A DNA stretch of 64,000 nt, taken from IMG/VR virus record IMGVR_UViG_3300017786_003484, positions 62,001-126,000 of that record. One strand, 5' to 3'. Under the pieces are notes generated by a model, which searched no databases, was not told where the DNA came from, and saw only the letters and a program-made list of their open reading frames with translations. Numbering within the stretch: the first letter of the stretch is position 1; each line of letters starts with the position of its first letter. The position numbers were made by a program, and so were the translations under genes. This document shows, one piece after another, positions 42,461-62,683 of this stretch.

Positions 42461-43557
42461 AGAAAACCGTATTTAATAAAAATAAAGTAGATTATACAAA
42501 ACAACCGATGTTTTTTGGTGAAGAATTAAACTCTCAACGTTTTGATGAGTTCCGTTATCCTGTGTTTGATAAGTTAACACAAACACAACTTGGATATTTC
42601 TGGAGACCAGAAGAAGTTAGTTTACAAAAAGATAGAAGTGATTATCTAAACTTTACTGATTCTCAGAAGTTTATTTTTACAAGTAACTTAAAGTATCAAA
42701 CGTTACTCGATAGTGTTCAAGGTAGAGGTCCGGCGATTGCATTTGTACCTTATTGTTCGTTACCCGAGCTAGAAGCATGTATGATTACTTGGGATTTCTT
42801 TGAAACTATTCATAGCCGCAGTTATACTCATATTATTAAAAACATATATCCTGATCCTAGCGAGGTTTTTGATACTATTCTTGACGATGAAAAAATTGTT
42901 GCTAGAGCAGAAAGTGTAACAAAAGCATATGATGATTATATCAATGATGCACAATATTACTCAGCCACAGGTAAAGGTGATTTACGAGAAATTAAGAAAA
43001 AATTATATCTAGCAATGGTTAATGTTAACGCATTAGAAGGTTTGCGTTTTTATGTATCTTTTGCATGTACCTTTGCATTTGGTGAATTAAAAACAATGGA
43101 AGGTTCTGCTAAGATTGTTAGTTTAATTGCTAGAGACGAAAGTCAGCATTTAGCAGTTAGTACACATATTATTAAGAATTGGATGAAAGGTGATGATCCA
43201 GAAATGGTTTCTATTGCTAAAGAATGTCAAGATGAAATTGGACTCATTTATGATAAAGTAGTAGAGGAAGAAAAGGAATGGGCAGATTATTTGTTTACAA
43301 ATGGTTCTATTGTTGGACTAAACGAAAAACTATTACATATGTTCATTGAGCATACTGCAAACAAAAGACTTAAGAGTTTAGGATTACCAATTCGTTATAA
43401 CCAGAGTCCAAACGATAATCCGTTACCTTGGACACAACATTGGCTTTCAAACAAAGGAGTACAAAATGCTCCGCAAGAAACAGAAATTGAAAGTTATGTT
43501 ATTGGTGGAATTAAACAAGACGTAGACAAAGACACATTTACAGGATTTAAATTATAA
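42448..43557 (+). CDS. nrdB: Ribonucleotide reductase class Ia beta subunit
   Basis: FWRPEEVSL, QTLLDSVQGR, FETIHSRSY, LEGLRFYVSF, IARDESQH, PQETEIESY. Confidence 0.98.
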   Translation: MQHLKKTVFNKNKVDYTKQPMFFGEELNSQRFDEFRYPVFDKLTQTQLGYFWRPEEVSLQKDRSDYLNFTDSQKFIFTSNLKYQTLLDSVQGRGPAIAFVPYCSLPELEACMITWDFFETIHSRSYTHIIKNIYPDPSEVFDTILDDEKIVARAESVTKAYDDYINDAQYYSATGKGDLREIKKKLYLAMVNVNALEGLRFYVSFACTFAFGELKTMEGSAKIVSLIARDESQHLAVSTHIIKNWMKGDDPEMVSIAKECQDEIGLIYDKVVEEEKEWADYLFTNGSIVGLNEKLLHMFIEHTANKRLKSLGLPIRYNQSPNDNPLPWTQHWLSNKGVQNAPQETEIESYVIGGIKQDVDKDTFTGFKL

Positions 43558-43883
43558 TGTTAGTATCAACTAAAACAAGAAAAAAAGGAGATGTGATCTC
43601 TATAAAACTATCAAATGGCGAAGAGCTTATTTCTAGTTTTGTCGAAGAACAGGATACACATCTCCTTATTGATAGGCCAGTAGTTTTACAATCTGGTCCC
43701 AAAGGAACTCCAGCTTTGATGCCGTTCTTTATGACAGCATCACCTGATGCTACAAGAGACATACAGTTAAGCAAAACTCATATTGTTATGATTGCTGATA
43801 CTGATGCTCCTTTAGCCAAGCAGTATACCTCAGCAATGTCAGGAATTATACAAACAGGAGCCATTCCAGGGTTGCAAGTTTAA
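43557..43883 (+). CDS. Small hypothetical protein (possible Sm/SH3-like beta fold)
   Basis: GDVISIKLSNGEELI...LLIDRPVVL. Confidence 0.65.
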   Translation: MLVSTKTRKKGDVISIKLSNGEELISSFVEEQDTHLLIDRPVVLQSGPKGTPALMPFFMTASPDATRDIQLSKTHIVMIADTDAPLAKQYTSAMSGIIQTGAIPGLQV

Positions 43884-43894
43884 TAAATACTTGT

Positions 43895-44179
43895 ATGACT
43901 GAAGTTCACAGAGATACAGATTCTAGAATATGCGGAGCACAAACCGTTGTTGCTGGTAACTCAACTGTCTTTGCAAATAATTTACTGGTAAGTGTTGATG
44001 CAGATCCTAATTCACACGGCTCCGGCAGTATTATTGCAAGTACAAAAAATGTTTATGCTCATAACAAACTAATTGTTGAGAACGGTGATGCCGCTAACCC
44101 GGATTCATTATGCCCAATACCACCTCATTGTGGCCCAGACACTAGTTCAGGGTCTCCTAATGTATTTGTAGGAAGTTAG
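43895..44179 (+). CDS. PAAR-like baseplate spike tip, T4 gp5.4-like
   Basis: VHRDTD..CG, TVFANN, NVYAHN..IVENGD, H/C metal ligands, GSPNVFVG end. Confidence 0.85.
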   Translation: MTEVHRDTDSRICGAQTVVAGNSTVFANNLLVSVDADPNSHGSGSIIASTKNVYAHNKLIVENGDAANPDSLCPIPPHCGPDTSSGSPNVFVGS

Positions 44180-44180
44180 C

Positions 44181-46043
44181 ATGGTTAATATTCCAGTAAT
44201 CCCAGGAGTCAATGTTCAAACACAAGGAATACTCAATAAGTCTATTAAAGACATAATTTGTGCGATACTCTTTGGCGGTATTGGAAACCTTTTAAAAGGA
44301 AATATCATATGTATTGAAGCAAATATAAACGAGATGCTTGAAGATGCTGGATATGCTAACTTATATGATATAAAAGACGAATTAAGATTACTACAAGATG
44401 AAGTTAAAGCATTTAACGACCATTTAGGTATAAATGATATAACGCAAAGGATTAATGATGCGTTAGCAGAAGTAAGATATCTACTAAGTCTAGGAGGATT
44501 ATGTCCTGTTCCAATTAAGATACCAAATATTAACGGAGATATATTAGATCAAGTCACTGATAATGTTTTTAATAACTTACAAGGTGTATTAAGTGCATTT
44601 GGTCCATTGCTAAAACCTAAAATTTGTATTGATGCACAAGGAAGAATAAACACAGGATCTTTTGATCCAGGTAGTATACTTGATAATATCAGGAAAGCAT
44701 CACAAAATGCGTTAAATGCTGGAAGTGTAATACCATCAAGTATTACATCAGGCTTTAATAACCAAATAAGCGGTGTTACAAGCAGTATTAAACAGGCAAG
44801 GGCAATAGAACTATTTCCAGACTTTAGACACAAGCATAACTTATTAACAGGAGCACCTGTTGTTGCTGGACAACCAGCGATAACTATTGCCGCTAGACCA
44901 TCAGATGCTGATATTGCCGCAGTAGCTGGACTTTCGACTACAAGTGGCCCAGCATTTGAGGCCGCAGGAGCCTCTTATCCTCCTCAAGGAAATCCTAATT
45001 TAACAGATGCAACTAAGCAAGCACAACAGTTGGTTGCCAATGTTGCAAATAGTGCAAACTATCCTATTAATGCTGATAAAAATCTATGGGCAAGAGCATT
45101 GGGACCTGAAGTATATGCATTAGCATTAGATGCTTTAAACGGAGATGACCCATTTGTAGGTCAATCTCAAGATGTCTATGATTATTGTGGAAGAGTAGTT
45201 TCGCAAGAAACACAAACTATTACCGGAGATCCATTAGGTGCAGGATTGTCAGATACTACAGATGCAAATCTAACACCAACACCAATAAACTATAGTTTAC
45301 TATGGATTGATGCACCAGCACAAAGTAGGGTTGGTTGGGCAGTTAGTGGAATTACAGAAGAAGCATTAGTACCAGATGACTATGGTTGCGAAGTACTAAC
45401 ACCAGCACTAGCATTAAACCCTGAAATTGAGTTATTTCAAGGCAAATCTCATATACTAAGTCTGCCACCAAGTAACCCAAATGTTAATTCTTTGGAAATA
45501 AGCAATTTTGGCTATAAAGATAACGGTTTAAGTGCCGTACGGACCCAAATTTCCTACGAAATGCCAGTTGGACAGGAATTTTACATATACGAAGCCAAAT
45601 TAGACGGTTCAGGTAATAGAGTACCCGATATAACGAAGAGATGGACAAATGGACTGGTTCGTTTTGAATTTTCTGAATACTTAGATGAAGCAAATGGCAG
45701 AAACGAAGATCAAATTACTTGGGCTCAATCATTTATTCCGGATTTAATTCCAGATCCAAATGATACCAATAAGCAATTTGATTCTCAAGGACGATTGTTA
45801 AAGAGTACTTTGATTCAGGCACCGCTACCTCCTGAACCTGGAGAAGTTTGGACTGATAATGGATCAGTAGTATACGATAGTCCTACAGGTGGCAATCCAA
45901 TCTTAGTAAAAACTTGGAAACGAGCAGTAGCAAATCTTGTACTTGGCGAGAATATGCTTATTGAAGTAGACAGTACCTTCCCTGATTACCTAACCTACAG
46001 TAATGAGGCTGGTACCGTATTTGGGCTACTAAAAATAACGTAG
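44181..46043 (+). CDS. Large hypothetical protein, probably baseplate-associated
   Basis: 620 aa immediately after the PAAR gene; IICAILFGG, LGGLCP motifs. Confidence 0.55.
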   Translation: MVNIPVIPGVNVQTQGILNKSIKDIICAILFGGIGNLLKGNIICIEANINEMLEDAGYANLYDIKDELRLLQDEVKAFNDHLGINDITQRINDALAEVRYLLSLGGLCPVPIKIPNINGDILDQVTDNVFNNLQGVLSAFGPLLKPKICIDAQGRINTGSFDPGSILDNIRKASQNALNAGSVIPSSITSGFNNQISGVTSSIKQARAIELFPDFRHKHNLLTGAPVVAGQPAITIAARPSDADIAAVAGLSTTSGPAFEAAGASYPPQGNPNLTDATKQAQQLVANVANSANYPINADKNLWARALGPEVYALALDALNGDDPFVGQSQDVYDYCGRVVSQETQTITGDPLGAGLSDTTDANLTPTPINYSLLWIDAPAQSRVGWAVSGITEEALVPDDYGCEVLTPALALNPEIELFQGKSHILSLPPSNPNVNSLEISNFGYKDNGLSAVRTQISYEMPVGQEFYIYEAKLDGSGNRVPDITKRWTNGLVRFEFSEYLDEANGRNEDQITWAQSFIPDLIPDPNDTNKQFDSQGRLLKSTLIQAPLPPEPGEVWTDNGSVVYDSPTGGNPILVKTWKRAVANLVLGENMLIEVDSTFPDYLTYSNEAGTVFGLLKIT

Positions 46044-46044
46044 G

Positions 46045-46224
46045 ATGGAGATATTTTTGATATGTTTGGTATTGTTCTTGCTCATTGTAGCAATTATGAG
46101 TATAGGCCTCCTAAAAGGCCGTTCTGTAAGAGGAACATGTGGTGGTGCAGGTTACGTTTGCTCCATGTGTGGAGAGGTAAGTGTACTCCCTCAGAAGAAA
46201 AAGGTTGACATTACGGACCTTTAG
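46045..46224 (+). CDS. nqrM: NqrM/DUF539-like Na+-NQR maturation peptide (59 aa; not in ORF track)
   Basis: MEIFLICLVLFLLIVAIMSIGLLKGRSVRGTCGGAGYVCSMCGEVSVLPQKKKVDITDL: one TM helix, M.IG, G[ST]CGG, CxxC. Confidence 0.75.
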   Translation: MEIFLICLVLFLLIVAIMSIGLLKGRSVRGTCGGAGYVCSMCGEVSVLPQKKKVDITDL

Positions 46225-46233
46225 TGCTATGTT
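46205..46233 (+). promoter_or_regulatory. Early promoter of the AAAGGTTGAC family
   Basis: AAAAAGG-TTGACA-17 nt (TTACGGACC...)-TATGTT. Confidence 0.6.
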
Positions 46234-46269
46234 ATACATAATAGTGTAATATATGAAAGGATTTAAGTG

Positions 46270-46650
46270 ATGCATGTTAGTAAATTGTCTATTGTTGCGG
46301 CGTTGTCGCTCATAATGATGTTAATAACATTTAACATAGCAACGGCTCACGAATATTCATACAAGCATTATCATAATTCTCATGATAGTTGGGACGTTGA
46401 CAGGTATGATGATTATAGTTACTATCACAGTGATTATTATAAACGTTATAAAAGAAATGATCGCGAAAGAGAACATTGGGATTGGTATTATGACGATAAG
46501 AGTGGCCCAGAAAGAGAGGACACATATTACATGCCAACACCTTCTCCAATAATCGTGCAACCTGTTCCTCCTATAGGTTATGAAAGAGTTATTGCATATG
46601 ATAACTTATGTCATTGCAATATATACGTTCTTGTACCTATCAGACAATAA
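46270..46650 (+). CDS. Exported His/Tyr/Asp-rich low-complexity protein
   Basis: Signal peptide ending ATA-HE; HEYSYKHYHNSHDSWDVDRYDDYSYYHSDYY; C-terminal CHC. Confidence 0.6.
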   Translation: MHVSKLSIVAALSLIMMLITFNIATAHEYSYKHYHNSHDSWDVDRYDDYSYYHSDYYKRYKRNDREREHWDWYYDDKSGPEREDTYYMPTPSPIIVQPVPPIGYERVIAYDNLCHCNIYVLVPIRQ

Positions 46651-46758
46651 TCTTAAAACCCTACCTATTAGGTAAATATTGGTAATATTGCTTTTATAAA
46701 TCTGATCGATACAGATTTTAGAATATTATTGACCTAGAAGGAAAGGAGAATTATACAA

Positions 46759-47838
46759 ATGGAGCCAATTAAATTAAAGTGGCTAATAGCTCACGAGCCA
46801 CAATACCTATTTGTCCGCACGGCAAAAGCATTCCAAGAAGAATTAGAAAAAAGATGTCCAGGAGAGTTTGATATTGAAATCCTAGACATGAAAACTTACA
46901 TTCAAAAGTACGATGAAGTACCAGAATTACATCTTAAACCAGCATCTATAAAAAACTTAGAGAAAGACTGGGAAAATAGCAATAATATGGGCGGCGGAAT
47001 TTTTAAATCTGTGGCACAATCAGAGATAGGCAAGAAATGGAAAGCATATTTTTCTGCAATTAAGGATGGACGTATTGACATTAGTCAAACACAAATTACA
47101 GTTATAGGATCTTTCTTATATAAGCCTTTTCACTCTTTAGACCTTCCATTCCTATTCAAGGATCATGACCATGTAACCAGAGCATTAGACGGATGGATTG
47201 GTAAAAAACTTCGCGGCGAGCTGGAAGATAGAACTGGAGTTAAATCTTTAGGTTTTACTTACTCAGGCGGATTTAGAATTATCGGTTCTAACCATGATAT
47301 TGAAGGAGTATCTGACTTAAAAGATACAACTGTACAGACTGTTCCGACTACTACTGCAATGTTTAATAGTCCAGAAATTGGCAGTACTGCTATTCCTAGA
47401 AGGTCAATGGATATTCAAGAAGCTAAAGATTTTGCTAAAGATAGTAACTCGGCTGTTGAAACAACTTACCTAAGATTTAAAGGAACAAATATTTTAAAGA
47501 CAAACCATTCTATGTTCTTAACTAGTATTTTAGCAGGATCAAAATTATTTGACAAGCTAACACCAGAACAACAAGAAGCTTTCAAAGAATCTGCTTATGC
47601 AGTATCAAAGATTGAAAGAAAATGGTCACTTGAAGACTGTGAAAAGTATGAAAGAGAAGCAGAAGAGAAAGGAATTCAGATAAGAGATATTACTCAAGAA
47701 GAATCTGATTTTCTTGCTTCTAATGCTCGTGTTTCGTACGAAGATTATTTTTCAACTGATCATCAAAACGGTGGTAAAGTGCCAGACGAGCTTTATCATA
47801 AACGTAAACGTATTGTTGACGATATTAAAGCAATATAA
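46759..47838 (+). CDS. dctP: Divergent TRAP substrate-binding protein (DctP fold) without signal peptide
   Basis: GRIDI, LDLPFLFKDHDH, LGFTYSGGFR, KLTPEQQEAFKESA; SD AAGGAG before the ATG and no hydrophobic leader. Confidence 0.8.
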   Translation: MEPIKLKWLIAHEPQYLFVRTAKAFQEELEKRCPGEFDIEILDMKTYIQKYDEVPELHLKPASIKNLEKDWENSNNMGGGIFKSVAQSEIGKKWKAYFSAIKDGRIDISQTQITVIGSFLYKPFHSLDLPFLFKDHDHVTRALDGWIGKKLRGELEDRTGVKSLGFTYSGGFRIIGSNHDIEGVSDLKDTTVQTVPTTTAMFNSPEIGSTAIPRRSMDIQEAKDFAKDSNSAVETTYLRFKGTNILKTNHSMFLTSILAGSKLFDKLTPEQQEAFKESAYAVSKIERKWSLEDCEKYEREAEEKGIQIRDITQEESDFLASNARVSYEDYFSTDHQNGGKVPDELYHKRKRIVDDIKAI

Positions 47839-47845
47839 GTAACAA

Positions 47846-47897
47846 AATAGACTAGATAGGTAATTCAATTTTAAAACCCTATCTAGTCTATTCTTTT
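47846..47897 (+). terminator. Long hairpin terminator
   Basis: AATAGACTAGATAGG / CCTATCTAGTCTATT 15-bp stem followed by CTTTT. Confidence 0.65.
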
Positions 47898-47957
47898 GAT
47901 AAATAAAGTTAACATGTGTATAGCACATGTTATTAATTAAAAAGGTACAAATAAAAT

Positions 47958-48176
47958 ATGGCAATAGAACTAACAGGCAAAGTAAAATGGTTTCAAGACG
48001 CAAAAGGATGGGGTTTTATTAAACCTGACGATGGTTCCGATGATGTTTTTGCACACTATTCAGCAATTAATTCGGATGGCTTTAAATCATTAAAAGAAGG
48101 TCAAGCAGTAACATTTGAAGTAATTCAAGGTGCTAAAGGACGTCAAGCCGCCAATATCAATTTAATTGAATCTTAA
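47958..48176 (+). CDS. cspA: Cold-shock protein
   Basis: GKVKWF..KGWGFI (RNP1), DVFAHYSAI (RNP2), [20 protein letters not shown]. Confidence 0.97.
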
Positions 48177-48309
48177 GACTAACTCTCCATAAATTATAAC
48201 AATAGTAATCTTAAAGACTAAATAGATTATGGTAGTACATGTATAGGAACATAGAGTAACTATGCATATAACATCTGTTTACAGAAAATAGATAAGGCAT
48301 TAGAGATTC

Positions 48310-48807
48310 ATGAGTTTAACTGACTTCATCGACAGAAGTATAAGTCGATTTGCAAAATATTATTCTTGGTTTGCATTACTAATGGTATTGTTCGTTGTGA
48401 TCAATGTCTTGGGAAGATATTTCTTTGACATTCGCAATGATTATGCAGTTGATTCAACATGGCAATTATACGGTATGCTTATTATGTTTGGTTGCAGTTA
48501 TTCATTAGGAAAAGAAGCACATATTAGAACAGATCTGTTCTGGAACAATTATAAAGATCGTACAAAAGCAATTATTGACTTTGTAAGTTATCTCTTACTA
48601 TTCTTTCCTTCATTTGCACTTATCACATACATCAGTTTCAATGATACATCAGCCGCTATTGAGATGAACGAACGTAGTTCTGAAACAATGGCCCAGCTTA
48701 TTATATGGCCTATGAAGATTGGTATCACACTTGGTTTAGTACTTTTGATGGTACAAGCATTGAGTCAAATGATCAAATGTTATAGAAGGATTTTTATCAA
48801 TGAGTAA
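48310..48807 (+). CDS. dctQ: TRAP transporter small permease
   Basis: Four TM segments; VLGRYFF, WQLYG, HIRTDLF. Confidence 0.92.
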   Translation: MSLTDFIDRSISRFAKYYSWFALLMVLFVVINVLGRYFFDIRNDYAVDSTWQLYGMLIMFGCSYSLGKEAHIRTDLFWNNYKDRTKAIIDFVSYLLLFFPSFALITYISFNDTSAAIEMNERSSETMAQLIIWPMKIGITLGLVLLMVQALSQMIKCYRRIFINE

Positions 48808-50194
48808 TGAATGGTTAGCAATGACAATGTTATTTACAATGATTGCTGGCATATTTGTTGGAGTTCCAGTTAGTTTTACACTAACATTCTTAGCATTAAT
48901 TTTTGGATTAATGGGATTAGGATTAAGTGTGTTTGATCTCACATATCTCAACCTATTAGGAGGACTTTCAGATGAAGTGCTGATGAGTATTCCTATGTTT
49001 ATCCTTATGGGTTATGTTGCTGAACGAGCCGGACTGGTAGAGAATTTATTTGAGAGCTTAAAAAAGGTACTTGCAGGAGTTCCAGGCAACTTATACATTG
49101 TTGTTATCTGTATTGCAGTATTAATTAGTTTAGCAACAGGAGTAGTCGGAGCATCAGTAACACTATTGGGCATTATGGCCGCTCCAAGTATGATTAAGCA
49201 AGGATACGATCCTAAACTATCAGCAGGAGTAATAGCAGGAGGCGGATCTCTTATCATGATCCCTCCATCCATTCCCCTTATTGTAATGGCGCCTACAATG
49301 AATCTTAATATCATTGACGTATATGCGGCCGCAATAGGACCAGGATTAGCGATTGCATTTATGTATCTAGTATACGTTATATTCCTTATAAAAACAAAGC
49401 CAGAGGTAGCACCTATGATACCTGTGGAAGAAAGAGTAAAAGTAGATTTCAAGTTAATTCTGTTAACGTTATGGCATATTGTGCCATTAGCATCATTGAT
49501 TCTTATTACATTAGGATCAATGTTATTTGGACTAGCAACTAGCACAGAAGCTGGTGCCTTTGGTGCCTTTGGTGCTTTATGTTTAGCCGCTATTAACAGA
49601 AGATTAACTTTAACAAATATTCAAGAAGCATTATTAAAAACTACCAATACGTCGGCAGTGGTAATGTTATTAGCAATTACGTCAACAATATTTGGTGCCG
49701 TATTTGCTTCCTTGGGTGGTGACAAAATCATTGTATCAGTACTAACTTCAATGCCTATACCCGGATGGGCAATAGTTGGAGCGATATTAGTGTTATGTCA
49801 TATTTTAGGCTGGCCCTTTGAGTGGCCAGTGGTAGTGCTAGTGTTCTTACCAATTTTCTTACCAGTATTAATTGATACTGGTGTTGACTTAATTTGGTTT
49901 GCGGCCGCTTTGGGTGTTATTTTACAAACAGCATATTTAACACCTCCTGTAGCCTTAACCGGATACTACCTAAAACAGGTGGTGCCTTCGTGGGATCTTA
50001 AATTAATATTCAAAGCAATGATGCCCTTTATGTATATTCAGGTTGTTTGTGTTGTAATATTGTTTATTACACCTGGCCTTGCAACATGGTTACCTAATTA
50101 CCTAGCAGAGCAAAGAAAAAATATAGTACAAGAAGTACTAGATGAGGATGTCAAAGGACAGGAAGTCGACTTCCTAGGTGTCCTTGGACAATAA
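48800..50194 (+). CDS. dctM: TRAP transporter large permease
   Basis: GVPVSF, IPMFILMG, GVVGASV, MIPPSIPLIV, ATSTEAG, AYLTPPV..GYYLK, PGLATWLP. Confidence 0.95.
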   Translation: MSNEWLAMTMLFTMIAGIFVGVPVSFTLTFLALIFGLMGLGLSVFDLTYLNLLGGLSDEVLMSIPMFILMGYVAERAGLVENLFESLKKVLAGVPGNLYIVVICIAVLISLATGVVGASVTLLGIMAAPSMIKQGYDPKLSAGVIAGGGSLIMIPPSIPLIVMAPTMNLNIIDVYAAAIGPGLAIAFMYLVYVIFLIKTKPEVAPMIPVEERVKVDFKLILLTLWHIVPLASLILITLGSMLFGLATSTEAGAFGAFGALCLAAINRRLTLTNIQEALLKTTNTSAVVMLLAITSTIFGAVFASLGGDKIIVSVLTSMPIPGWAIVGAILVLCHILGWPFEWPVVVLVFLPIFLPVLIDTGVDLIWFAAALGVILQTAYLTPPVALTGYYLKQVVPSWDLKLIFKAMMPFMYIQVVCVVILFITPGLATWLPNYLAEQRKNIVQEVLDEDVKGQEVDFLGVLGQ

Positions 50195-50213
50195 TATTTT
50201 GGAGAATAAAAAT

Positions 50214-51308
50214 ATGAAACGTTTCATCGGAGCGATATCAGCTATCGCAATGTCATTTGGCGTAGTGGCTTCAGTAGCAACTGCAAATGCCAAAGAACTA
50301 CAGATTGCATCTAGTTTTGGAGCAATCTCAACTTTTAACGAGCAAGCAAACTTTCTTGCCGAAAGAGTTAAAGTATTAACTGACGGAAAAATTGATATGA
50401 AAATCAGACCTTCCGGCGCATTAGTTCCTTCTTTTAAGGTTCTAGATGCTACGGCGTCAGGTGCAGTAGATGGTGCATGGACTCAGTCTTATTACTGGGT
50501 AGGAAAGTCAAAGACTCTTGCATTGTTTAATAGTCCGTTGGGAGGACCTTACGGTATGGACGGGATTGATTTCCTAGGTTGGATGTTCCACGGTGGTGGA
50601 CTTGAATTGTATAACGATTTTTATCAGAATGAGTTAAAAATGGATGTACAGGCACTTCCAGCAATGCCTACTCAGAATCAGCCATTAGGTTGGTTTCATA
50701 GACCAATTAAAGATCTAGCAGATCTTAAAAACTTTAAATGTCGTCAAACTGGCGCCAACGTAGAACTTTATGCTCGTATGGGTATGCAGACTATTGGTAT
50801 GCCAGGTGGTGAGATTATGGCCGCGGCCCAAAAGGGTGTTATTAATTGTGCTGAATTCGTTGGTGGTTTAGAAGACGAACGTCTTGGATTTCCAACTGTA
50901 TGGAAATACTACTACTTGAATTCATTGCATGAGCATTCAAATACTGGTGATCTATTGATTAACGGTAAAGTGTGGCGTTCAATGACTAAGCAACAGCAGA
51001 CCGCTGTTCGTTCTGCCGCTTATGAGTCATATCTATGGTGGTTAACTGATATTCAAGCAAAAAATGGTCAAGCACTTGCTAGAATGATCAAAGAGCATGG
51101 CGTTAGAGTTATGAAGACTCCAGCAGATATTTTGGTTGCTGAGTTAGAAACTATTGACGAAATGTTAGCAGAAAATGCCGCAAAGGATCCTTATTTTGCA
51201 AAAGTACTTGCTTCTCAGAAAGCATGGGCAAAGAAAGTAGTTCCATTTAAGAACGTAGCATTTACGCCTTATAACTATGCCGCAGATTACTACTGGAAGA
51301 AAAAGTAG
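50214..51308 (+). CDS. dctP: TRAP substrate-binding protein, TakP-like subfamily, with signal peptide
   Basis: MKRFIGAISAIAMSFGVVASVATANA signal; GALVPSFKVLDA..GAVDG, YYWVGK, WMFHGGGLEL, GWF.RPI..L.DLK..KCR, AEFVG, LGF. Confidence 0.93.
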   Translation: MKRFIGAISAIAMSFGVVASVATANAKELQIASSFGAISTFNEQANFLAERVKVLTDGKIDMKIRPSGALVPSFKVLDATASGAVDGAWTQSYYWVGKSKTLALFNSPLGGPYGMDGIDFLGWMFHGGGLELYNDFYQNELKMDVQALPAMPTQNQPLGWFHRPIKDLADLKNFKCRQTGANVELYARMGMQTIGMPGGEIMAAAQKGVINCAEFVGGLEDERLGFPTVWKYYYLNSLHEHSNTGDLLINGKVWRSMTKQQQTAVRSAAYESYLWWLTDIQAKNGQALARMIKEHGVRVMKTPADILVAELETIDEMLAENAAKDPYFAKVLASQKAWAKKVVPFKNVAFTPYNYAADYYWKKK

Positions 51309-51328
51309 TTTTAAAAGCATATAACGTT

Positions 51329-51361
51329 AAAAATAGGGTGCTTTATGCATCCTATTTTTTT
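51329..51361 (+). terminator. Intrinsic terminator
   Basis: AAAAATAGGGTGC-TTTAT-GCATCCTATTTTTT. Confidence 0.8.
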
Positions 51362-51502
51362 GGCTATAACTTCTATATTTGTTATAAATGTATAAATACA
51401 CTTGGATAGATACGGTTTAATACCTTATCGGAAAAAGCCAGTTTTCTATCTCAATGTTACTTGAAGTAATATTGTTTTCTTAAGAAAAAAAAGGAGTCAA
51501 TT

Positions 51503-52441
51503 ATGACACAGAAAATTAGATGGGTTCTAGCACATGAGCCAATTGAATTATTTCTAAGAGCGGCAAAAGTTTTCGCATCAGAAGTTAATGCAAAAGCAGA
51601 AGGCGCACTAGATATTGAAGTTATGACAATGAATGAGTATTCTGCAAAGTATAATAACGGTGTTGTTGTTACTAAGCACGAACTTGTTGATATGATTAAC
51701 AGAGGCGACATTGAAATGTCCCAAACATACACAGTAGACATTGGCGAATATGATCACGAATTCCGTGCATTAGATATGCCATTCCTATTTGAGTCACACG
51801 ACCACGCAACTAAAGTGTTCGAAGGCCCAATTGGTCAGTCACTACTAGACGGATTAACAGAATCAGCTGGTGTTAAAGGTTTAGCCTTTACATACTCCGG
51901 TGGATATAGAATTATTCCTGGACAAGAAGGAATTGATACTATTGAAGATATTAGAGATCTTAAACTTCGTACTTCTTTCTCACCTGTTGCTATTGAAACA
52001 TTCAAAGCAGTTGGTGCAAACGTAGTTCCAATGGAACTAGAAGAAATGACAGATGCAATCCAAGATGCAGACATTCAAGTTGGTGAGTCTACTTACCCAC
52101 GTATCTATGCATTAGGACAAGACAGAGTTTCTAAGGTTATTAACCACACAGAACACTCATTGTTCTTAACAAGCATCTTAATCAACCAAGACTTCTTTGC
52201 AACTCTTGGTGAAGAACTACAAGGTATTGTTGTAGACGCCGCTAAAACAGCCGCTAATTACGAACGTGTAATCAGCATTGAAGACGTTGCACTTACACAA
52301 GCTAAAGCTGAAAGCGATGGCATTGAAGTTCGTAGAATGTCAACAGAAGAAAAAGCTCGTTTCAAAGCCGCTACTGCTCATGTTTATGACATGTTCCCAG
52401 AGTTAGCTGGAACAGTTAAGAAGATCCAAGATACAAAATAA
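51503..52441 (+). CDS. dctP: Second signal-less DctP-fold protein
   Basis: RGDIEM, LDMPFLFESHDH, AFTYSGGYR, DLKLRT, GANVVPM, NHTEH; SD AAGGAG directly before MTQKIRW; TATAAATA at 51391-51398. Confidence 0.88.
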   Translation: MTQKIRWVLAHEPIELFLRAAKVFASEVNAKAEGALDIEVMTMNEYSAKYNNGVVVTKHELVDMINRGDIEMSQTYTVDIGEYDHEFRALDMPFLFESHDHATKVFEGPIGQSLLDGLTESAGVKGLAFTYSGGYRIIPGQEGIDTIEDIRDLKLRTSFSPVAIETFKAVGANVVPMELEEMTDAIQDADIQVGESTYPRIYALGQDRVSKVINHTEHSLFLTSILINQDFFATLGEELQGIVVDAAKTAANYERVISIEDVALTQAKAESDGIEVRRMSTEEKARFKAATAHVYDMFPELAGTVKKIQDTK

Positions 52442-52462
52442 GATATCTTAGAACTACTATGG

Positions 52463-52490
52463 AAAAGGCGCTAATGGCGCCTTTTCTTTT
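52463..52490 (+). terminator. Intrinsic terminator
   Basis: AAAAGGCGC-TAATG-GCGCCTTTT-CTTTT. Confidence 0.8.
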
Positions 52491-52546
52491 GGGTAAATTA
52501 TCAACCAAAAAGGATTATAAGTAGAAGTAACAAAGAAGGAAATATT

Positions 52547-52771
52547 ATGGATAAAGTTTTTGTTTTAGTAATTTCAATGTGGGGACACAATGGAACAGCA
52601 TGGGAATATATTGGAAACCAATCAGTTTTAAATCAAGACATGACATTACAACAATGTCAAGTTTTGTCAGACGAAGAAAAAACTTGGACTAAGCACGATA
52701 CAAACGAGTTTTATCGTATTCAAATGCAATGCTATCCTAAGAGATGCGCCGGTCAAAAAACCTGTAAATAA
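52547..52771 (+). CDS. Small Cys-containing hypothetical protein
   Basis: 74 aa; VFVLVISMWG...TLQQC...MQCYP. Confidence 0.65.
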   Translation: MDKVFVLVISMWGHNGTAWEYIGNQSVLNQDMTLQQCQVLSDEEKTWTKHDTNEFYRIQMQCYPKRCAGQKTCK

Positions 52772-52834
52772 CAACTAACGGATGTAAGTTCTTTAACACG
52801 TTAACTAAATATTAGCAATGGATAGGAGAACATT

Positions 52835-53920
52835 ATGCCGGCAAGAAATCATAGAAATTGGTTAAAGAAACCATTAGTAGAATATGTTAGTAGCGAAATA
52901 TATTCAAGTCAAGAAATATTTGAAGAAGAAATCGAAAGTATCTTTTCAAAGGTGTGGGTACCAGTATGCCACATCAGTGAAATGTATAACAAATTAGACT
53001 ATCGAACATCACAAATTGCTGGACATAATATTATTGTGTACAATACCGGAGATGGTGTACGAGCATATCGTAATTATGGCAGTTGGGCACCTACTGGAAC
53101 ATTGCAAGCACCTATTGTAACAGTTGAACCACAACTACATAGCGAAGTAAAGCACGGAGGTATGGTATGGGTAACACTTGATCCTAATCCTACACAGAGT
53201 GTTGAAGAGTGGACAGCAGGTGCATTTGATTGCATTGCTGATGCTATTGACACAGAAGAACTAGAAATTTTTCATTATCATAAAGCAATTATTCCTACCA
53301 ACTACAAACTATGGCATGATACTAACAGTGAATTCTATCATGACTTCATGCATTACTTTAATCGTGTAACTGGTTTCAACGATGAGTATTTTGCTAGAAA
53401 GAATATTCCCTTTGATAACGGGCATGTGAACGTTAGTAGTTTTACTGTAAATTATACAGAGTTTGATAAAGAAGGCGATAGAGGTGAACTAAGTTTTCCT
53501 AACTTACCTCCAAACCAATGGTATATGGTAGATTTGTTTCCTGGCTTTAACTTTAATTTACGTGGTAGTGCATATCGTTCAGATAGTGTTACGCCACTTG
53601 GACCAAATAGTGTACTAATAGAGTTTAGAGGATACGGTTTAAAGAAAGATACTCCAGAAGAAAGACAAACTCGTATTAAACATCATAATACTATCTGGGG
53701 ACCGTTTGGCAGAAACTTACATGAAGATCTTTTAGGTGTAACCGGGCAAGGAGCATCAATGTCTCCAGGCACAGAGAAAAGAAATATTTTACATGGAAGA
53801 CATGAAAATAGTACTATACATGATGAAGTTGGTATGCGTCACTACTATGCAGAATGGGGAAAATATATGGAGTTAGATCCTAGTAATCCAATAAAAGAGG
53901 TTGACAAAAAGGCCGCATAG
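52835..53920 (+). CDS. Ring-hydroxylating oxygenase alpha-subunit homolog lacking the Rieske cluster
   Basis: IFEEE.E.IFSKVWVPVCHISE, RAYRN, GGMVWVTL, NYKLWHDTNSEFYHDFMH, LFP, HEDL, RHYYAEW; no CxH/CxxH. Confidence 0.85.
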   Translation: MPARNHRNWLKKPLVEYVSSEIYSSQEIFEEEIESIFSKVWVPVCHISEMYNKLDYRTSQIAGHNIIVYNTGDGVRAYRNYGSWAPTGTLQAPIVTVEPQLHSEVKHGGMVWVTLDPNPTQSVEEWTAGAFDCIADAIDTEELEIFHYHKAIIPTNYKLWHDTNSEFYHDFMHYFNRVTGFNDEYFARKNIPFDNGHVNVSSFTVNYTEFDKEGDRGELSFPNLPPNQWYMVDLFPGFNFNLRGSAYRSDSVTPLGPNSVLIEFRGYGLKKDTPEERQTRIKHHNTIWGPFGRNLHEDLLGVTGQGASMSPGTEKRNILHGRHENSTIHDEVGMRHYYAEWGKYMELDPSNPIKEVDKKAA

Positions 53921-53929
53921 TGTTATAAA
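53901..53929 (+). promoter_or_regulatory. Promoter of tmRNA gene
   Basis: AAAGAGG-TTGACA-17 nt-TATAAA. Confidence 0.7.
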
Positions 53930-54023
53930 TATAATACAATGGTGAAGCATAACAAACGTTGTACAGGACTCGGGGGCAGTACCCGACGCCTCCACCATAA
54001 ACACACGAACGAGGAATGGAACT

Positions 54024-55156: not shown

Positions 55157-55924
55157 ATGAAAAAGACCATTGATGTGTATGACGGGCTTATTAGTAAAGA
55201 ACTACAACACGAAATACACGAATATGCACTTAATCATACATGGTATAGTGCATTACGTCATAACTGTGATTATGATGCTACAGTAGATCCACTAAACAAT
55301 GAATTAGGCGAAGGCGAACGAGGAATTATCCGACATCCGTATGGTAATAGTACTGATATGGTAAAAACTAGGCATCCGTTAATCTATAAACTGTTTCAAG
55401 AAATAAATGATAAAGTACTAGGAGGCAAAGCAGATATTGATGGTATAAAAGAAGATATTGGCGGACTTCGAAGTGGCAAGAACGTTTATAGTGACGGACA
55501 AAACTTCTTCCAAAAATACGATTATGACAATACTATTAAAGGTTGGACATGTTATATGAATGCAAAATGTCAGGCTCCAAAGAAATCATTGAAACCAGGA
55601 ATAGGATACATTCACAGAGATAGCGGCCCTGATTACGTTGATAAGACTAACTATGCAACTGTACTATTTGTTACTAATCCAAAATGGTTGCCAAGTTGGG
55701 GCGGAGAATATAACTTTTTTGGAGATGATTTAGATGGTGCTGAAATACATTCTAAGTACGGCTATCCCATAGGATTTCCAACAAACATTGTTGGTCATAA
55801 ACCAGGTAGAATAATTGTATATAGACACGATCAAAATCATATAAGTCTTCGTATAGCACCAGATGCTGAAGGAATGCCTGTTAGGGTGGCATTTAGGGTA
55901 AACTTGAATGATGATAATGAATAA
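55157..55924 (+). CDS. 2OG-Fe(II) oxygenase
   Basis: IHRDSG (HxD), TVLF..NPKW..SWGGE, KPGRIIVY....H, RVAF. Confidence 0.85.
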   Translation: MKKTIDVYDGLISKELQHEIHEYALNHTWYSALRHNCDYDATVDPLNNELGEGERGIIRHPYGNSTDMVKTRHPLIYKLFQEINDKVLGGKADIDGIKEDIGGLRSGKNVYSDGQNFFQKYDYDNTIKGWTCYMNAKCQAPKKSLKPGIGYIHRDSGPDYVDKTNYATVLFVTNPKWLPSWGGEYNFFGDDLDGAEIHSKYGYPIGFPTNIVGHKPGRIIVYRHDQNHISLRIAPDAEGMPVRVAFRVNLNDDNE

Positions 55925-56419: not shown

Positions 56420-57058
56420 ATGCTATCAACATATGCAAATAAACAAAATACTCATCTTGTAATAGATACAACAACTAATGGAATATTAATTGCAGTACAT
56501 AGCAACGTTGTTGCGAATGCAATATGTTTTAAAATATTGAATACAGAAGCAATGTCTATTAGGCTAGTAGATTTCAACGAGGAAATAAATCCATTGCTTA
56601 AACCACAGTTTAATGAGTCTAGTAATTTTATATTAACTAAAGTTGGACACAACTTAACACCTCAATCAACAGCAAATGTTGGACAACTTGTAAAAAGTAC
56701 AGATGGCAATGGCCGTTTTGGTGTAGCTAAAATGTCTGAAGTAACAGATGAGTGGATAGCATTAAGAAAGAAAGCACATAATATCAAAGAAGTTATAGCA
56801 AGTAGCGATCTTCGAGTTCTTAGATCAGCAACACCGAGCAAAAAGTTCTTTGGAGACACTATTACCTTTCCTTTTATTAAAAAAGAACTTGATAAATGTA
56901 ATCCACAGGAAGATCAATACACAGATGCTATTCGAGAATGGGCAAATATAGTAAATGTTCCTGTAAAAAAAGGATTTGAAATGCTATCAGCAGAAAGCAA
57001 TAATATTACTCATTTGGTTAATAATTCAAGAATATTTTGGAGTAAAAAATGTCTTTAA
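56420..57058 (+). CDS. Hypothetical protein, paralog of 58079-58798
   Basis: Shares ML.T..N..N..LID and EL.KC.P.EDQYT...EWA with the 58079 ORF. Confidence 0.7.
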   Translation: MLSTYANKQNTHLVIDTTTNGILIAVHSNVVANAICFKILNTEAMSIRLVDFNEEINPLLKPQFNESSNFILTKVGHNLTPQSTANVGQLVKSTDGNGRFGVAKMSEVTDEWIALRKKAHNIKEVIASSDLRVLRSATPSKKFFGDTITFPFIKKELDKCNPQEDQYTDAIREWANIVNVPVKKGFEMLSAESNNITHLVNNSRIFWSKKCL

Positions 57059-58086
57059 ATTATGCTTTTAGTACTAAATTAAAACATGGTAGTGAATATG
57101 CTAAGAAAGACATTGCTGTTTTTCGTTCTCTTTATCATATGGATCCAGATCCATTTTTAGTTGATAGAACTGACTCTGTGGTCTTTCCTTTCTCAGAAAA
57201 CAATTATTTTCCAATGATACAACCGTTATCTAATGTTATGAGTTGGGAAGAATGTACAAAAGAGAGAGTTGAAGAACTAATATCCTTTGACAAAGAACTT
57301 TATGTTATGTGGAGCGGAGGAATAGATAGTACATTAATGCTTTTATCTTTTATGAAATATAGTAATATGAATAATGTTACAATAGTTTTAAACATGGACT
57401 CAATTAAAGAATATCCTTATTTTTATAAAAGGTTTATAGCTCAATGTAATTATAAATTACTGTCAACTGAACAATTAATGAATAATGCATTGCTAAATGA
57501 CATCAATGGATTAATAGTATCAGCCGAACATGCTGATCAGTTAGTTGGATCTCCTTTGGCTCAGTTACTTGCAACAACATCAGGTAGAACAATGCTTGGT
57601 CTTCCATTTGATGAAGAAAATTTCAGCAAATTTTTAACAAACTTAAATGTTCCAGTACATCATATTGATACAATAATGGAACTCTATAACATTAGTATTA
57701 AAAACAGTCCTCGTCCAATTAAGAATATGTGGGATCTCTGTTGGTGGCATGGATTTAACTTTAAATGGCAAACCATCTACATGAAACTGGCTATTAGAAT
57801 AAAAAATCCTTTGAATCTTTTAACTTTCTACTCTTCGGTAAACTTTCAAAATACCAGTATACACCAAGAAGGTAATACACTTGATCTAAAGAAAGTTTTT
57901 AAAGATATAATCGTTAATTATACCGAAGATACTGAATACCTAAGAAAAGAAAAATTTGCATCTTCAACATTATATTATGGACTAACCTCTTCGACAGGAT
58001 TAGACAAAAATTGGAATAAAATTAATGTTGATATGATTGAATACTATAATAAAGATAACACTATAAAGGAAATAATGAATGCTTGA
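57049..58086 (+). CDS. PP-loop ATP pyrophosphatase (asparagine-synthetase C-domain-like, no glutaminase domain)
   Basis: VMWSGGIDST PP-loop; IVSAEHADQLVG resembles AsnB GeGaDelFgG. Confidence 0.8.
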   Translation: MSLNYAFSTKLKHGSEYAKKDIAVFRSLYHMDPDPFLVDRTDSVVFPFSENNYFPMIQPLSNVMSWEECTKERVEELISFDKELYVMWSGGIDSTLMLLSFMKYSNMNNVTIVLNMDSIKEYPYFYKRFIAQCNYKLLSTEQLMNNALLNDINGLIVSAEHADQLVGSPLAQLLATTSGRTMLGLPFDEENFSKFLTNLNVPVHHIDTIMELYNISIKNSPRPIKNMWDLCWWHGFNFKWQTIYMKLAIRIKNPLNLLTFYSSVNFQNTSIHQEGNTLDLKKVFKDIIVNYTEDTEYLRKEKFASSTLYYGLTSSTGLDKNWNKINVDMIEYYNKDNTIKEIMNA

Positions 58087-58798
58087 TACTTTTAGCAATA
58101 GAAAAAATGTTACAATGATGCTTATAGACCAAGAAGATTTCAGTATATTAACTGTTACATCAAGTGTCTCGGTACTTAATGCATTGTCAGAAGGTTTTGA
58201 TAACTCTGTACCTGTACTTGGAAGAATAACAAATCCTGATGCGTTAAAAGCACTAAGAACTTATAATCAATCAGCTTCTCAAGCTCTGTTAGCAAATGTT
58301 GGACTTGATGATCTAACTCAAGAAATTGAAACCAAAGCAAATTGGGACACGATTGGACTAACACCAATTAGCTTTGGCTTAAAGCCAATGAACGAAAAAA
58401 CAGAAGGGTTTGTATTAAAAAGAAAGATTGCAAATAGAAGACAAAATGTACTGTCTCAAATTGAATCTAAATTAGAACGTTATGCTAGTCGAGTTATTAA
58501 TTCTTCTCTTGATGATATTTTTATTCCTTATATGTCAAACGAACTTAGTAAATGTAAACCAGATGAAGACCAATATACCAATCCTGTAATTGAATGGGCA
58601 ATAGCATCAGGTTTAGATGTAAAACAAGCATATCATGAGTTAAGCATGGTAACAAGTTCTGCTAATTTAACTACTATGCGTCTTCATGCTCATTGGAGGT
58701 TCTTTGTAAATCAAGTTAATAAGCTCGACTTTCAAGTTGACGGAATACTAGAAAAAGTTATTGCTGATGCTGAACTAAAACTTAGGTCTGGGCTATAA
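58079..58798 (+). CDS. Hypothetical protein, paralog of 56420-57058
   Basis: ELSKCKPDEDQYTNPVIEWA vs ELDKCNPQEDQYTDAIREWA. Confidence 0.7.
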   Translation: MLDTFSNRKNVTMMLIDQEDFSILTVTSSVSVLNALSEGFDNSVPVLGRITNPDALKALRTYNQSASQALLANVGLDDLTQEIETKANWDTIGLTPISFGLKPMNEKTEGFVLKRKIANRRQNVLSQIESKLERYASRVINSSLDDIFIPYMSNELSKCKPDEDQYTNPVIEWAIASGLDVKQAYHELSMVTSSANLTTMRLHAHWRFFVNQVNKLDFQVDGILEKVIADAELKLRSGL

Positions 58799-61780: not shown

Positions 61781-62683
61781 ATGAAGATATTACCCTTAGC
61801 CACGATCGCAGTATTCGTGGGCATCTTTACGGCGAATGCTGGTGAAAAACTAGCACTTCCGTCTACAGAAGGTGTAGACATTACAACATATGGTGAAGTC
61901 CGAGCATATGTTGAAACTTCGACTGTTAATGATGTTGATACAGCAATTAAAACATCAGACAGTAAAATAGGACTAAAATTTAAGACTAAAGAACCAGTAT
62001 ATGTCTTTGGAGAAATGTCAGCTAATGTTGATCTATCCTCAGACGGAGCAGACGATGTAACAACTCGGTTTGGTTATATTGGCGTAGGTACCAATGCATT
62101 GGGAGAAATTTCACTTGGACGTACAATGAGCATTATGGATTCATTTGTTGATAAAGCAGATGTGTTTATGGGTGCAGGAAATCAAGGAGTTCAGAAGACT
62201 CCTTTTACTATGAATAACAGTTTGAAGTATACTGGTAGTTTTAGCGGAGTCGATGTTGGCTTTCAAACACAAATGACTGATGATGCACAAGACCATGACT
62301 TGGATTTATATCAAATTGGTTTAGGCTACAAAGGCATTGGTGTTGCATATGCAAGAGATGAAATTAATTCATCTGACTACTATGGCTTGGGTGTTTCTCA
62401 AAAGTTTGGAAAAATTGGAGCATATGCTAGTGTATCGGTATTAGATGATGATACACAAGCAAATGATGCAGTTGGATATGAACTTGCTGGTTCATATGAT
62501 TTAAACGAAAAACTAACACTACAAGGCGGTTGGCAAGATACTGATGTTACATCAGATGACGGTAACTTGACAATTGAATCACAGTATGAGATTGCAACTC
62601 AATCAGTATTTTTTACTAATATTGATTATGACTTAACAACAGAAGATGCAACTCTTCGAACAGGTCTTAGCTTTACATTCTAA
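61781..62683 (+). CDS. Gram-negative outer-membrane porin
   Basis: Signal peptide, ITTYGEVR, SKIGLK, RFGYIG..T..LGEISLGR, NSLKYTGSFSG, alternating beta strands, C-terminal Phe (LSFTF). Confidence 0.9.
   Translation: MKILPLATIAVFVGIFTANAGEKLALPSTEGVDITTYGEVRAYVETSTVNDVDTAIKTSDSKIGLKFKTKEPVYVFGEMSANVDLSSDGADDVTTRFGYIGVGTNALGEISLGRTMSIMDSFVDKADVFMGAGNQGVQKTPFTMNNSLKYTGSFSGVDVGFQTQMTDDAQDHDLDLYQIGLGYKGIGVAYARDEINSSDYYGLGVSQKFGKIGAYASVSVLDDDTQANDAVGYELAGSYDLNEKLTLQGGWQDTDVTSDDGNLTIESQYEIATQSVFFTNIDYDLTTEDATLRTGLSFTF

Follow-up and report, generated by a model that had tools for sequence, protein, structure and literature searches.

Can a lytic-type phage carry a complete multi-subunit organic-acid importer, rather than a single transport component? 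The question was raised by a stretch of 64,000 nucleotides (hereafter the window), bases 62001-126000 of the 244,432-bp IMG/VR virus record IMGVR_UViG_3300017786_003484, for which the original prediction proposed an intact TRAP (tripartite ATP-independent periplasmic) transporter of the order dctQ-dctM-dctP. We examined the integrity of the three genes, their phage origin, their relation to known TRAP systems and their probable function. The observation is confirmed, and it is extended by two additional binding-protein genes and a porin gene that had not been noticed.

Organization of the dctQ-dctM-dctP locus

Three open reading frames, dctQ (48310-48807), dctM (48800-50194) and dctP (50214-51308, here also DctP2), follow one another on the + strand. 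Profile searches matched them to Pfam DctQ (PF04290, E 2.5e-20, profile 1-131/132), DctM (PF06808, E 1.7e-60, 2-412/413) and DctP (PF03480, E 2.2e-32, 7-284/286), all far above the curated cut-offs. The small membrane subunit DctQ (165 aa) shows three hydrophobic segments by a strict window, and its gene overlaps dctM by 8 nt. The large permease DctM (464 aa) aligns over residues 12-435 with the solved TRAP permeases 9pym, 7qha and 7qe5, and its twin-proline motifs P155-P156 and P382-P383, which sit at the Na+ sites in SiaQM (PMC9971032), are invariant. The most likely dctP start is the ATG at 50214, 19 nt after the dctM stop. The GTG at 50178 used in the original prediction marks the maximal ORF, while homologues begin at the MKRF start. 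DctP has a hydrophobic N-terminal signal segment (residues 4-22, likely cleavage ANA|KE), giving a signal peptide of about residues 1-26 (50214-50291), and the carboxylate-binding arginine in FKCRQTG is R177.

Despite the Pfam matches, scores are below the curated NCBIfam subfamily cut-offs for dctM (TIGR00786, 212.3 against 268.45) and far below for dctP (TIGR00787, 33.4 against 175.05), although that of NF037995 TRAP_S1 is passed (54.6 against 50). The module is therefore a divergent member of TRAP transporters (TC 2.A.56).

A hairpin followed by a U-run lies after dctP at 51326-51364 (+) (-16.9 kcal/mol, z -5.65, 0 of 200 shuffles as good). It was missed in a simple consensus scan for terminators and promoters, but direct folding showed a strong terminator, and the scan result was set aside. 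RNA contigs end at 51137-51320. The same consensus scan indicated a possible internal promoter or RNA 5' boundary inside dctM (49593..49635, +), with a sigma70-like TTAACA-17-AATATT match at 49593-49621. RNA contigs begin at 49633, 49634 and 49635 in three independent metatranscriptomes, and at 49672 and 49690 in two more, although this is an inference and not a proof. The T4 late promoter motif TATAAATA occurs only twice in the window against 11.6 expected, once 105 nt upstream of the DctP3 gene described below. It is absent upstream of the structural genes, so late-promoter control is not claimed.

Six metatranscriptomes from six studies hold contigs of the dctM 3' end plus dctP2 and of DctP3. 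Their depth is very uneven (0 to 70), which argues against carry-over DNA, although Logan contigs cannot strictly exclude DNA in RNA libraries. Contigs of dctQ and of the 5' half of dctM are sparse, and expression of the membrane parts is thus only weakly documented.

Phage origin and distribution of the module

Flanking genes are of phage type, as had been stated in the original prediction. Ribonucleotide reductase and an exonuclease lie upstream, and tail sheath, T4-type terminase, gp32 and UvsX elsewhere in the window. The record represents a T4-like jumbo phage with no integrase detected, although it is a linear metagenome-assembled contig, only 74% complete by CheckV. The module is located mid-contig, 110 kb into 244 kb.

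To test whether the arrangement could result from assembly, we searched for it in other data. The same synteny, from ribonucleotide reductase through DctP1, Csp, QMP and DctP3, occurs in 8 other IMG/VR contigs from different metagenomes. In addition, 93-98% of sampled words were found in 14 DNA runs from 13 studies (2018-2025). One 9.6-kb contig of a single run spans both borders, and a virome run covers the region. The third-position GC content (GC3) of the TRAP genes is 0.27-0.31, which is 1-2 SD above the window mean of 0.23, but far from the 0.77-0.94 of the nearest cellular genes. The three genes contain no stops or frameshifts and evolve under purifying selection, with dN/dS of 0.07-0.08 for dctQ, 0.075 for dctM and 0.08-0.11 for dctP2 (over dS 0.2-0.8), similar to ribonucleotide reductase (0.04-0.07).

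Phylogenetic analysis separated 77 phage-type DctM proteins from 136 cellular ones with support of 100, and the split was obtained again in an IQ-TREE mixture-model tree. In a search of 185,579 cellular species genomes, limited in the number of rows reported, the best was only 46-50% identical. The nearest cellular TRAPs belong to high-GC soil and freshwater Alpha- and Betaproteobacteria, which are implausible hosts, and the host was not identified; there is no tRNA in the window and 7 elsewhere in the genome. The phage clade is shared by distantly related T4-like phages. In one of them, seen in 99 sample blocks, the module sits next to T4 gp13, gp14, gp15 and TerL, and the TerL of that phage is 67-68% identical to Melnitz and HTVC008M. 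The phages sharing the clade include relatives of pelagimyophages and of the phages of SAR11 and OM43. DctQ is 55-62% identical in distant phage loci and 33-43% in cellular operons. The order Q-M-P is kept in all phage loci, whereas most of the nearest cellular operons are P-Q-M.

No comparable module was found in the cultured phages searched. Among GenBank phages, blastn disclosed only Csp matches, and tblastn with DctM three short human-faecal contigs at 23-25% identity, which are unrelated TRAPs. No PHROGs family matches DctQ, DctM, DctP2 or the porin. The ESM Atlas returned only bacterial clusters for DctM, which says little since clusters of under 50 members are not searched, and a cluster look-up gave no organism names for the phage-type DctM clusters. 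The pelagimyophage survey PMC7029224 does not mention TRAP, and no description of a phage TRAP transporter was found in the literature searched, which was incomplete, so absence is not proof.

Similarity to TakP and putative function

The resemblance of DctP2 to TakP, suggested in the original prediction, is real. The best PDB matches by sequence and by fold are the keto-acid receptor of Synechococcus CC9311 (7ug8, 1.5e-42) and TakP of Rhodobacter sphaeroides (2hzk/2hzl, 9e-42), with about 30% identity. The AF2 model (pLDDT 86.3) has a Foldseek TM of 0.82/0.90 to 7ug8, and TM values for these structures are 0.80-0.82 by query and 0.87-0.90 by target. The long C-terminal helical extension is present and aligns to TakP residue 352, with helices 304-349 and 355-361 in the model. 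The ligand and cation residues of TakP, R177, Y100, Q156, E214, W215 (backbone) and E240 (PMC1839085), map to R177, Y94, Q156, E214, F215 and E240. Five of these positions are invariant in 32 sequences, while position 215 varies (F, Y or W), as expected for a backbone contact. In contrast, the hydrophobic pocket of TakP (F40, I47, V97, Y99, T153, A212, A213, P243, V245) is not conserved, and the phage clade has S34, F41, Q91, Y93, T153, C212, A213, N243 and G245. The polar signature (S34, F41, Q91, N243, G245, F215) is itself conserved in all 13 phage sequences examined. The substrate may therefore differ from that of TakP, and a 2-oxoacid is a guess at the class only.

Compared with SiaPQM (7qe5, 7qha, 8thi) and the isethionate transporter IsePQM (9pym), DctM aligns over its whole length and an elevator-type mechanism is presumed to be shared, although sequence similarity is only distant (E 1e-21 to 1e-26) and the binding protein is of the cation-mediated TakP type rather than the SiaP type. 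Cyanophage and pelagimyophage PstS is likewise a phage auxiliary gene, a periplasmic binding protein with a signal peptide that raises nutrient uptake by the infected cell (PMC12379486). However, PstS is a single component that plugs into the host ABC transporter, whereas here both membrane subunits of a secondary transporter accompany the binding protein. Prediction of the Q+M+P2 complex gave an ipSAE of 0.52 (0.51-0.54), against 0.00 for the best of 3 controls. Runs agreed in at least 70% of contacts, and the partner's pLDDT was at least 81. The mark, reached by 58 of 80 solved complexes and 2 of 110 mismatched pairs, corresponds to weak support only, and the result may reflect memory of solved SiaPQM complexes.

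We consider it likely, on the basis of homology and without a transport or binding assay, that the region encodes a working TRAP importer made by the phage in its Gram-negative host during infection. In the proposed mechanism, DctP2 is exported by Sec, trimmed by signal peptidase, and captures a small monocarboxylic 2-oxo or 2-hydroxy acid together with a cation, as TakP does. It then docks on the DctQ-DctM permease, which moves the acid inward, driven by the Na+ gradient. Transport direction and Na+ coupling are inferred from SiaQM and TakPQM, and the substrate class and the benefit to the phage, which could be carbon and energy or a specific precursor for replication in a nutrient-poor ocean, are also inferences. 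If the system works in this way, infected cells of abundant marine bacteria take up a specific small organic acid at a phage-controlled rate, which bears on how viruses redirect the flow of labile dissolved organic carbon. The module is also a compact, naturally minimised TRAP system for structural and mechanistic work. The suggestion of the original prediction that imported 2-oxoacids feed several 2OG-dependent oxygenases nearby is not supported. TakP does not bind 2-oxoglutarate (PMC1839085), and only one confident 2OG-type oxygenase was found, 11 kb away (62749-63471, E 3e-13), plus one weak hit.

Other explanations were weighed against this one. TRAP genes are otherwise cellular, and the record is an incomplete metagenomic contig with somewhat raised GC3 in these genes, but a chimera or host contamination is effectively refuted by the recurrent synteny, the contigs bridging both borders, the phage-like codon composition and the absence of any cellular genome above 50% identity in the search described. 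A decaying passenger, to which the low NCBIfam scores and the diverged pocket could point, is also very unlikely in view of the intact frames, the purifying selection, the conserved pocket signature, the RNA contigs, and the catalytic and ligand motifs that are invariant across phage lineages whose TerL is only 33-36% identical. It is similarly improbable that only the binding protein matters, feeding a host QM permease as with cyanophage PstS. Phage transport genes are usually single binding proteins, RNA contigs are much better for dctP2 than for dctQ and the 5' half of dctM, and an internal start inside dctM is possible. However, an excess of SBP over permease is normal for SBP-dependent transporters, Q and M are as strongly constrained as P2, and they co-occur with it in every complete phage locus. 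Moreover, the three components have diverged from cellular operons in parallel (Q 33-43%, M 46-50%, P 44-52%), which points to a co-adapted set.

A less remote, though still doubtful, alternative is that the transporter works but imports a specific compound needed by the phage, such as a precursor for a phage pathway, a cofactor-like acid for its oxygenases, or a signal or osmolyte, which the signal-less DctP proteins then hold in the cytoplasm. The phage-specific polar pocket, which differs from the cellular relatives, is in accordance with this, as is the repeated presence of a signal-less DctP after QMP in at least three phage lineages. Oxygenase-like genes also lie nearby, Ring_hydroxyl_A-like at 52835-53920 and Asp/Arg hydroxylase-like at 62749-63471, with Asp_Arg_Hydrox near QMP in another locus (L106). 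On the other hand, no pathway link is demonstrated, neighbouring genes differ between lineages, TakP-type proteins bind simple 2-oxo or 2-hydroxy monocarboxylates, and DctP3-type proteins also occur in phages with no DctM, so their role need not be tied to the transporter.

Signal-less DctP paralogs and a phage porin

Two further DctP-family genes, not noticed in the original prediction, flank the operon on the + strand. DctP1 (46759..47838; PF03480, E 1.5e-26) has no signal peptide. It starts directly at the first beta-strand, and no upstream extension is possible. It has an insertion of ~36 residues, and Gln replaces the carboxylate Arg in all 4 family members. Its dN/dS is 0.14-0.18, and RNA contigs were found in two runs (X15 and X18). 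The gene is followed by a hairpin with a 15-bp stem and a U-rich tail (47846..47892, +; -19.8 kcal/mol, z -5.9, 0 of 200 shuffles as good), a likely terminator. Between it and dctQ lies a cold-shock protein (Csp) gene (47958..48176, +; phrog_729, E 2.9e-23; dN/dS 0.04-0.08), and a CSD gene is also found upstream of QMP in a distant locus (L108).

DctP3 (51503..52441; PF03480, E 3.1e-50; AF2 pLDDT 95.3) is a canonical DctP paralog that keeps the Arg. All 120 top homologues lack a signal peptide, and the corresponding Atlas clusters are 81-100% viral. The closest known proteins to DctP1 and DctP3 are canonical DctP-type binding proteins for sugar acids, isethionate and sialic acid (4p47, 8t9t, SiaP), with which a complete predicted DctP fold is shared (pLDDT 95, TM 0.85-0.90). 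The two paralogs are probably cytoplasmic ligand-binding proteins whose role is separate from the membrane parts. DctP3-type genes occur in jumbo phages that have no DctM.

A phage-encoded Gram-negative porin (61781..62683, +; PF13609 Porin_4, E 8.7e-20), with a signal peptide and a C-terminal Phe, lies 10 kb downstream, and its nearest Atlas clusters are mostly viral. It may form the outer-membrane part of the same uptake route, although the association is inferred only. A more speculative and rather unlikely possibility, but not an excluded one, is that marine T4-like and jumbo phages rebuild a whole uptake route of porin, TakP-like receptor and QM permease in the infected cell. Separately, they would deploy the large, almost purely viral family of signal-less DctP-fold proteins as metabolite sinks or sponges in the cytoplasm, or as binders of acidic sugars on the virion, a use of the TRAP binding-protein fold not described for cells. 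DctP3 has the highest RNA contig depth in the region (6-70), above its neighbours in all six metatranscriptomes, and its contigs end at 52422-52527, around a GC-rich hairpin and U-run terminator (52462..52486, +), the stem of which was seen in the centroid fold.

Organization of the TRAP genes and their phage context

Three genes on the + strand, dctQ (48310-48807, 165 aa), dctM (48800-50194, 464 aa) and dctP (stop at 51308), make up the TRAP unit. The maximal dctP ORF begins with the GTG at 50178, although the ATG at 50214 is the likely start. Each gene gives a full-length Pfam match, to PF04290 (2.5e-20), PF06808 (1.7e-60) and PF03480 (2.2e-32), respectively. dctQ and dctM overlap by 8 nt, while dctP follows dctM by 19 nt. 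The unit is closed by a hairpin plus U-run at 51326-51364 (-16.9 kcal/mol, z -5.65), which was missed in a consensus scan. DctP (hereafter DctP2) has one hydrophobic N-terminal segment ending in ANA|KE, and DctQ and DctM are strongly hydrophobic throughout. The original prediction of a complete and intact dctQ-dctM-dctP set in a lytic-type phage is therefore correct as written.

The IMG/VR virus record, of which bases 62001-126000 were studied, is 244,432 bp long, linear and 74% complete by CheckV. It encodes a tail sheath, a tail tube, a T4-type large terminase, gp32, a UvsX/RecA-like protein, a DnaB-type helicase, an exonuclease and class I ribonucleotide reductase. Its terminase is 43-49% identical to those of jumbo phages of Pseudomonas (PA5oct), Agrobacterium (Atu_ph07), Sinorhizobium and Vibrio. 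No integrase was found in this incomplete record. Overall GC is 35.6%, and seven tRNAs lie outside the window.

To address the possibility of a chimeric assembly, the arrangement was compared in independent datasets, and the module was found not to be a chimera. Eight other IMG/VR contigs from different metagenomes keep the same order, ribonucleotide reductase, orf620, DctP1, Csp, QMP, DctP3 and the downstream genes, and are 73-100% identical at protein level. Fourteen DNA runs from 13 studies (2018-2025; marine, seawater and viral metagenomes) hold 93-98% of the sampled words of 46000-53000. A single 9,588-nt contig of one sequencing run (X9) covers 43479-53066, which includes both borders, and a virome run (X1) also covers the region. 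GC3 of the TRAP genes (0.27-0.31) is close to the window mean (0.23 +/- 0.04) and far from that of the nearest cellular homologues (0.77-0.94). In comparison with the related phage contig L004, synonymous divergence is much lower for dctM, dctP2 and DctP3 (dS 0.28-0.36; 48800-52441) than for the flanking genes (0.8-1.6), suggesting recent recombination of that segment between related phages.

The module also appears not to be inactive, although its transport function is inferred from homology. Against close relatives, dN/dS is 0.07-0.08 for dctQ, 0.075 for dctM and 0.08-0.11 for dctP2, while ribonucleotide reductase gives 0.04-0.07. DctM aligns from residue 12 to 435 with solved TRAP permeases and keeps P155-P156 and P382-P383 as invariant columns; these twin-proline motifs lie beside the two Na+ sites in SiaQM (PMC9971032). 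Six metatranscriptomes from six studies contain contigs of the region in a consistent pattern, comprised of the dctM 3' end plus dctP2 (about 49634 to 51137-51320) and of DctP3 (51402-51486 to 52422-52527), the latter with the highest depth in every run. Depth ranges from 0 to 70 within 6 kb, and this unevenness argues for RNA rather than carried-over DNA, although assembler contigs cannot prove it. RNA contigs for dctQ and the 5' half of dctM are sparse. Contigs from three independent metatranscriptomes begin at 49633-49635 inside dctM, just downstream of a sigma70-like TTAACA-17-AATATT match (49593-49635 for the match and contig starts together), which may be an internal start that enriches dctP mRNA. 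The T4 late-promoter consensus TATAAATA occurs only twice in 64 kb (51391-51398 and 53924-53931), against 11.6 expected by chance; both copies are intergenic on the + strand, and one lies 105 nt upstream of DctP3.

Similarity of DctP2 to TakP-type receptors

By sequence, the best solved relatives of DctP2 are the Synechococcus CC9311 keto-acid receptor 7ug8 (1.5e-42) and TakP 2hzk/2hzl (9e-42), followed by pyruvate, lactate and cation-type receptors. An AlphaFold2 model (pLDDT 86.3) gives the same ranking by fold, with TM 0.82/0.90 to 7ug8. In TakP, pyruvate and its cation are held by Arg177, Tyr100, Gln156, Glu214, the Trp215 backbone and Glu240 (PMC1839085). The equivalent phage residues are R177, Y94, Q156, E214, F215 and E240. 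Five of these positions are invariant across 13 phage and 19 cellular sequences, while position 215 varies as F, Y or W.

In contrast, the residues lining the hydrophobic pocket of TakP are not conserved. All 13 phage proteins share S34, Q91, Y93, C212, A213, N243 and G245, and positions 41, 153 and 215 are F, T and F in most of them. The cellular relatives have W, V or I at position 91, T, V or S at 243, and W at 215. We therefore propose the substrate by class only, as a cation-assisted monocarboxylic 2-oxo or 2-hydroxy acid, and do not suggest a particular compound. A complex prediction of Q+M+P2 scored ipSAE 0.52 (0.51-0.54), while the best of 3 controls scored 0.00. This result is rated only as weak support, at a mark reached by 58 of 80 solved complexes and 2 of 110 mismatched pairs; the runs agree in at least 70% of contacts, and the partner's pLDDT is at least 81.

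The proposal that imported 2-oxoacids could feed several 2OG-dependent oxygenases nearby, made in the original prediction, is not supported. Only one confident 2OG-type oxygenase is near (62749-63471, Asp/Arg hydroxylase-like, 3e-13), plus one weak hit (55157-55924, E 0.12), and TakP does not bind 2-oxoglutarate (PMC1839085). In addition, a 361-aa protein (52835-53920) matches the catalytic domain of ring-hydroxylating oxygenase alpha subunits (PF00848, E 1.6e-6), but no Pfam match covers its N-terminal 140 residues, where a Rieske domain would be expected. It is present in the closest relatives (contigs L002, L003 and L007), while no match was found in the related phages L004-L006.

A phage clade of DctM

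A search of 5.8 billion proteins revealed about 60 clusters at 58-97% identity to DctM. Identity then drops to about 50%, where the first named proteins are Burkholderiales and Betaproteobacteria MAGs. Among one genome for each of 185,579 species, the best DctM is 46-50% identical, in Alpha- and Betaproteobacteria, Bradyrhizobium and a few others. In a tree of 213 sequences, the 77 phage-type proteins form one side of a branch with support 100. An IQ-TREE LG+C20 tree of 46 sequences gives the same split, with support 100 and branch lengths 0.72 + 1.05. Because the tree is unrooted, no donor can be named. The phage order is Q-M-P, while most of the nearest cellular operons are P-Q-M.

Every phage-type member whose context was inspected sits in phage DNA. 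These are the IMG/VR contigs of 154, 228, 116 and 88 kb and a contig with T4 gp13, gp14, gp15 and TerL immediately downstream, the DctM of which was seen in 99 sample blocks. Two further contexts are a 217-kb contig with PhoH, lysozyme, DnaJ and ClpB and a freshwater contig. In the 217-kb QMP-bearing phage-like contig (L143), DnaJ and a ClpB-type disaggregase are encoded a few kb downstream of the transporter (L143 15581-18681). A cold-shock protein gene sits just upstream of dctQ both here (47958-48176) and in a distant freshwater phage-like contig (L108 8915-9115) whose DctM is only 58% identical.

The terminases of three of these records are only 33-36% identical to that of the window, and one lineage has TerL 67-68% identical to those of the OM43 phage Melnitz and the Pelagibacter phage HTVC008M. 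Those isolates, and GenBank phages generally, have no such DctM, and PHROGs has no family for Q, M or P2. QMP is 55-81% identical across these lineages and is more conserved than the terminase, which suggests exchange among phages. No report of a phage-encoded TRAP transporter was found in the literature, although the incomplete coverage of the full-text search makes this absence of evidence only. While the transporter itself is an ordinary kind of system, what is new is a complete, co-adapted, phage-specific clade of it with a distinct pocket, its spread across marine T4-like and jumbo phages, and the accompanying signal-less binding proteins.

Signal-less DctP paralogs and other neighbouring genes

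The genome has three DctP genes, two of which were overlooked in the original prediction. DctP1 (46759-47838) and DctP3 (51503-52441) begin directly at the first beta-strand, have no hydrophobic segment and cannot be extended upstream. They resemble canonical DctP proteins for sugar acids, isethionate and sialic acid, and not TakP; the DctP3 model (pLDDT 95.3) gave the same ranking by fold. DctP3 keeps the Arg, while all four members of the DctP1 family have Gln at this position, plus a 36-residue insertion. Both paralogs are constrained (dN/dS 0.14-0.18).

All 120 best homologues of DctP3 also lack a signal peptide, and the nearest ESM Atlas clusters are 81-100% viral. This large, mostly viral family occurs in 31 IMG/VR loci, one of which is a 345-kb, 94%-complete phage that has no DctM at all; signal-less DctP is carried by loci L110, L111, L118 and L143. 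In other lineages, a signal-less DctP directly follows QMP (loci L018/L019 and L143) or lies about 1 kb downstream (L016/L020). We read DctP1 and DctP3 as cytoplasmic proteins binding an unknown ligand, while a role as a sink for the imported acid, as a sponge for another metabolite, or as a virion component is speculation. A jumbo-phage-like contig that carries the signal-less DctP (L110) also carries an orphan TctC, the binding protein of tripartite tricarboxylate transporters, next to two radical-SAM genes (L110 12894-13826).

Ten kb downstream, the phage also encodes a Gram-negative porin with a signal peptide and a C-terminal Phe (61781-62683; Porin_4, PF13609, 8.7e-20), likewise absent from the original prediction. 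Its nearest ESM Atlas clusters are again mostly viral, and PHROGs has no family for it. The porin supports a Gram-negative host and hints at a whole uptake route. Within 56420-58798, ORFs 56420-57058 and 58079-58798 are paralogs (28% identity), and ORF 57049-58086 has extra copies in the related phages L004-L006 and L023; none of them has a Pfam family.
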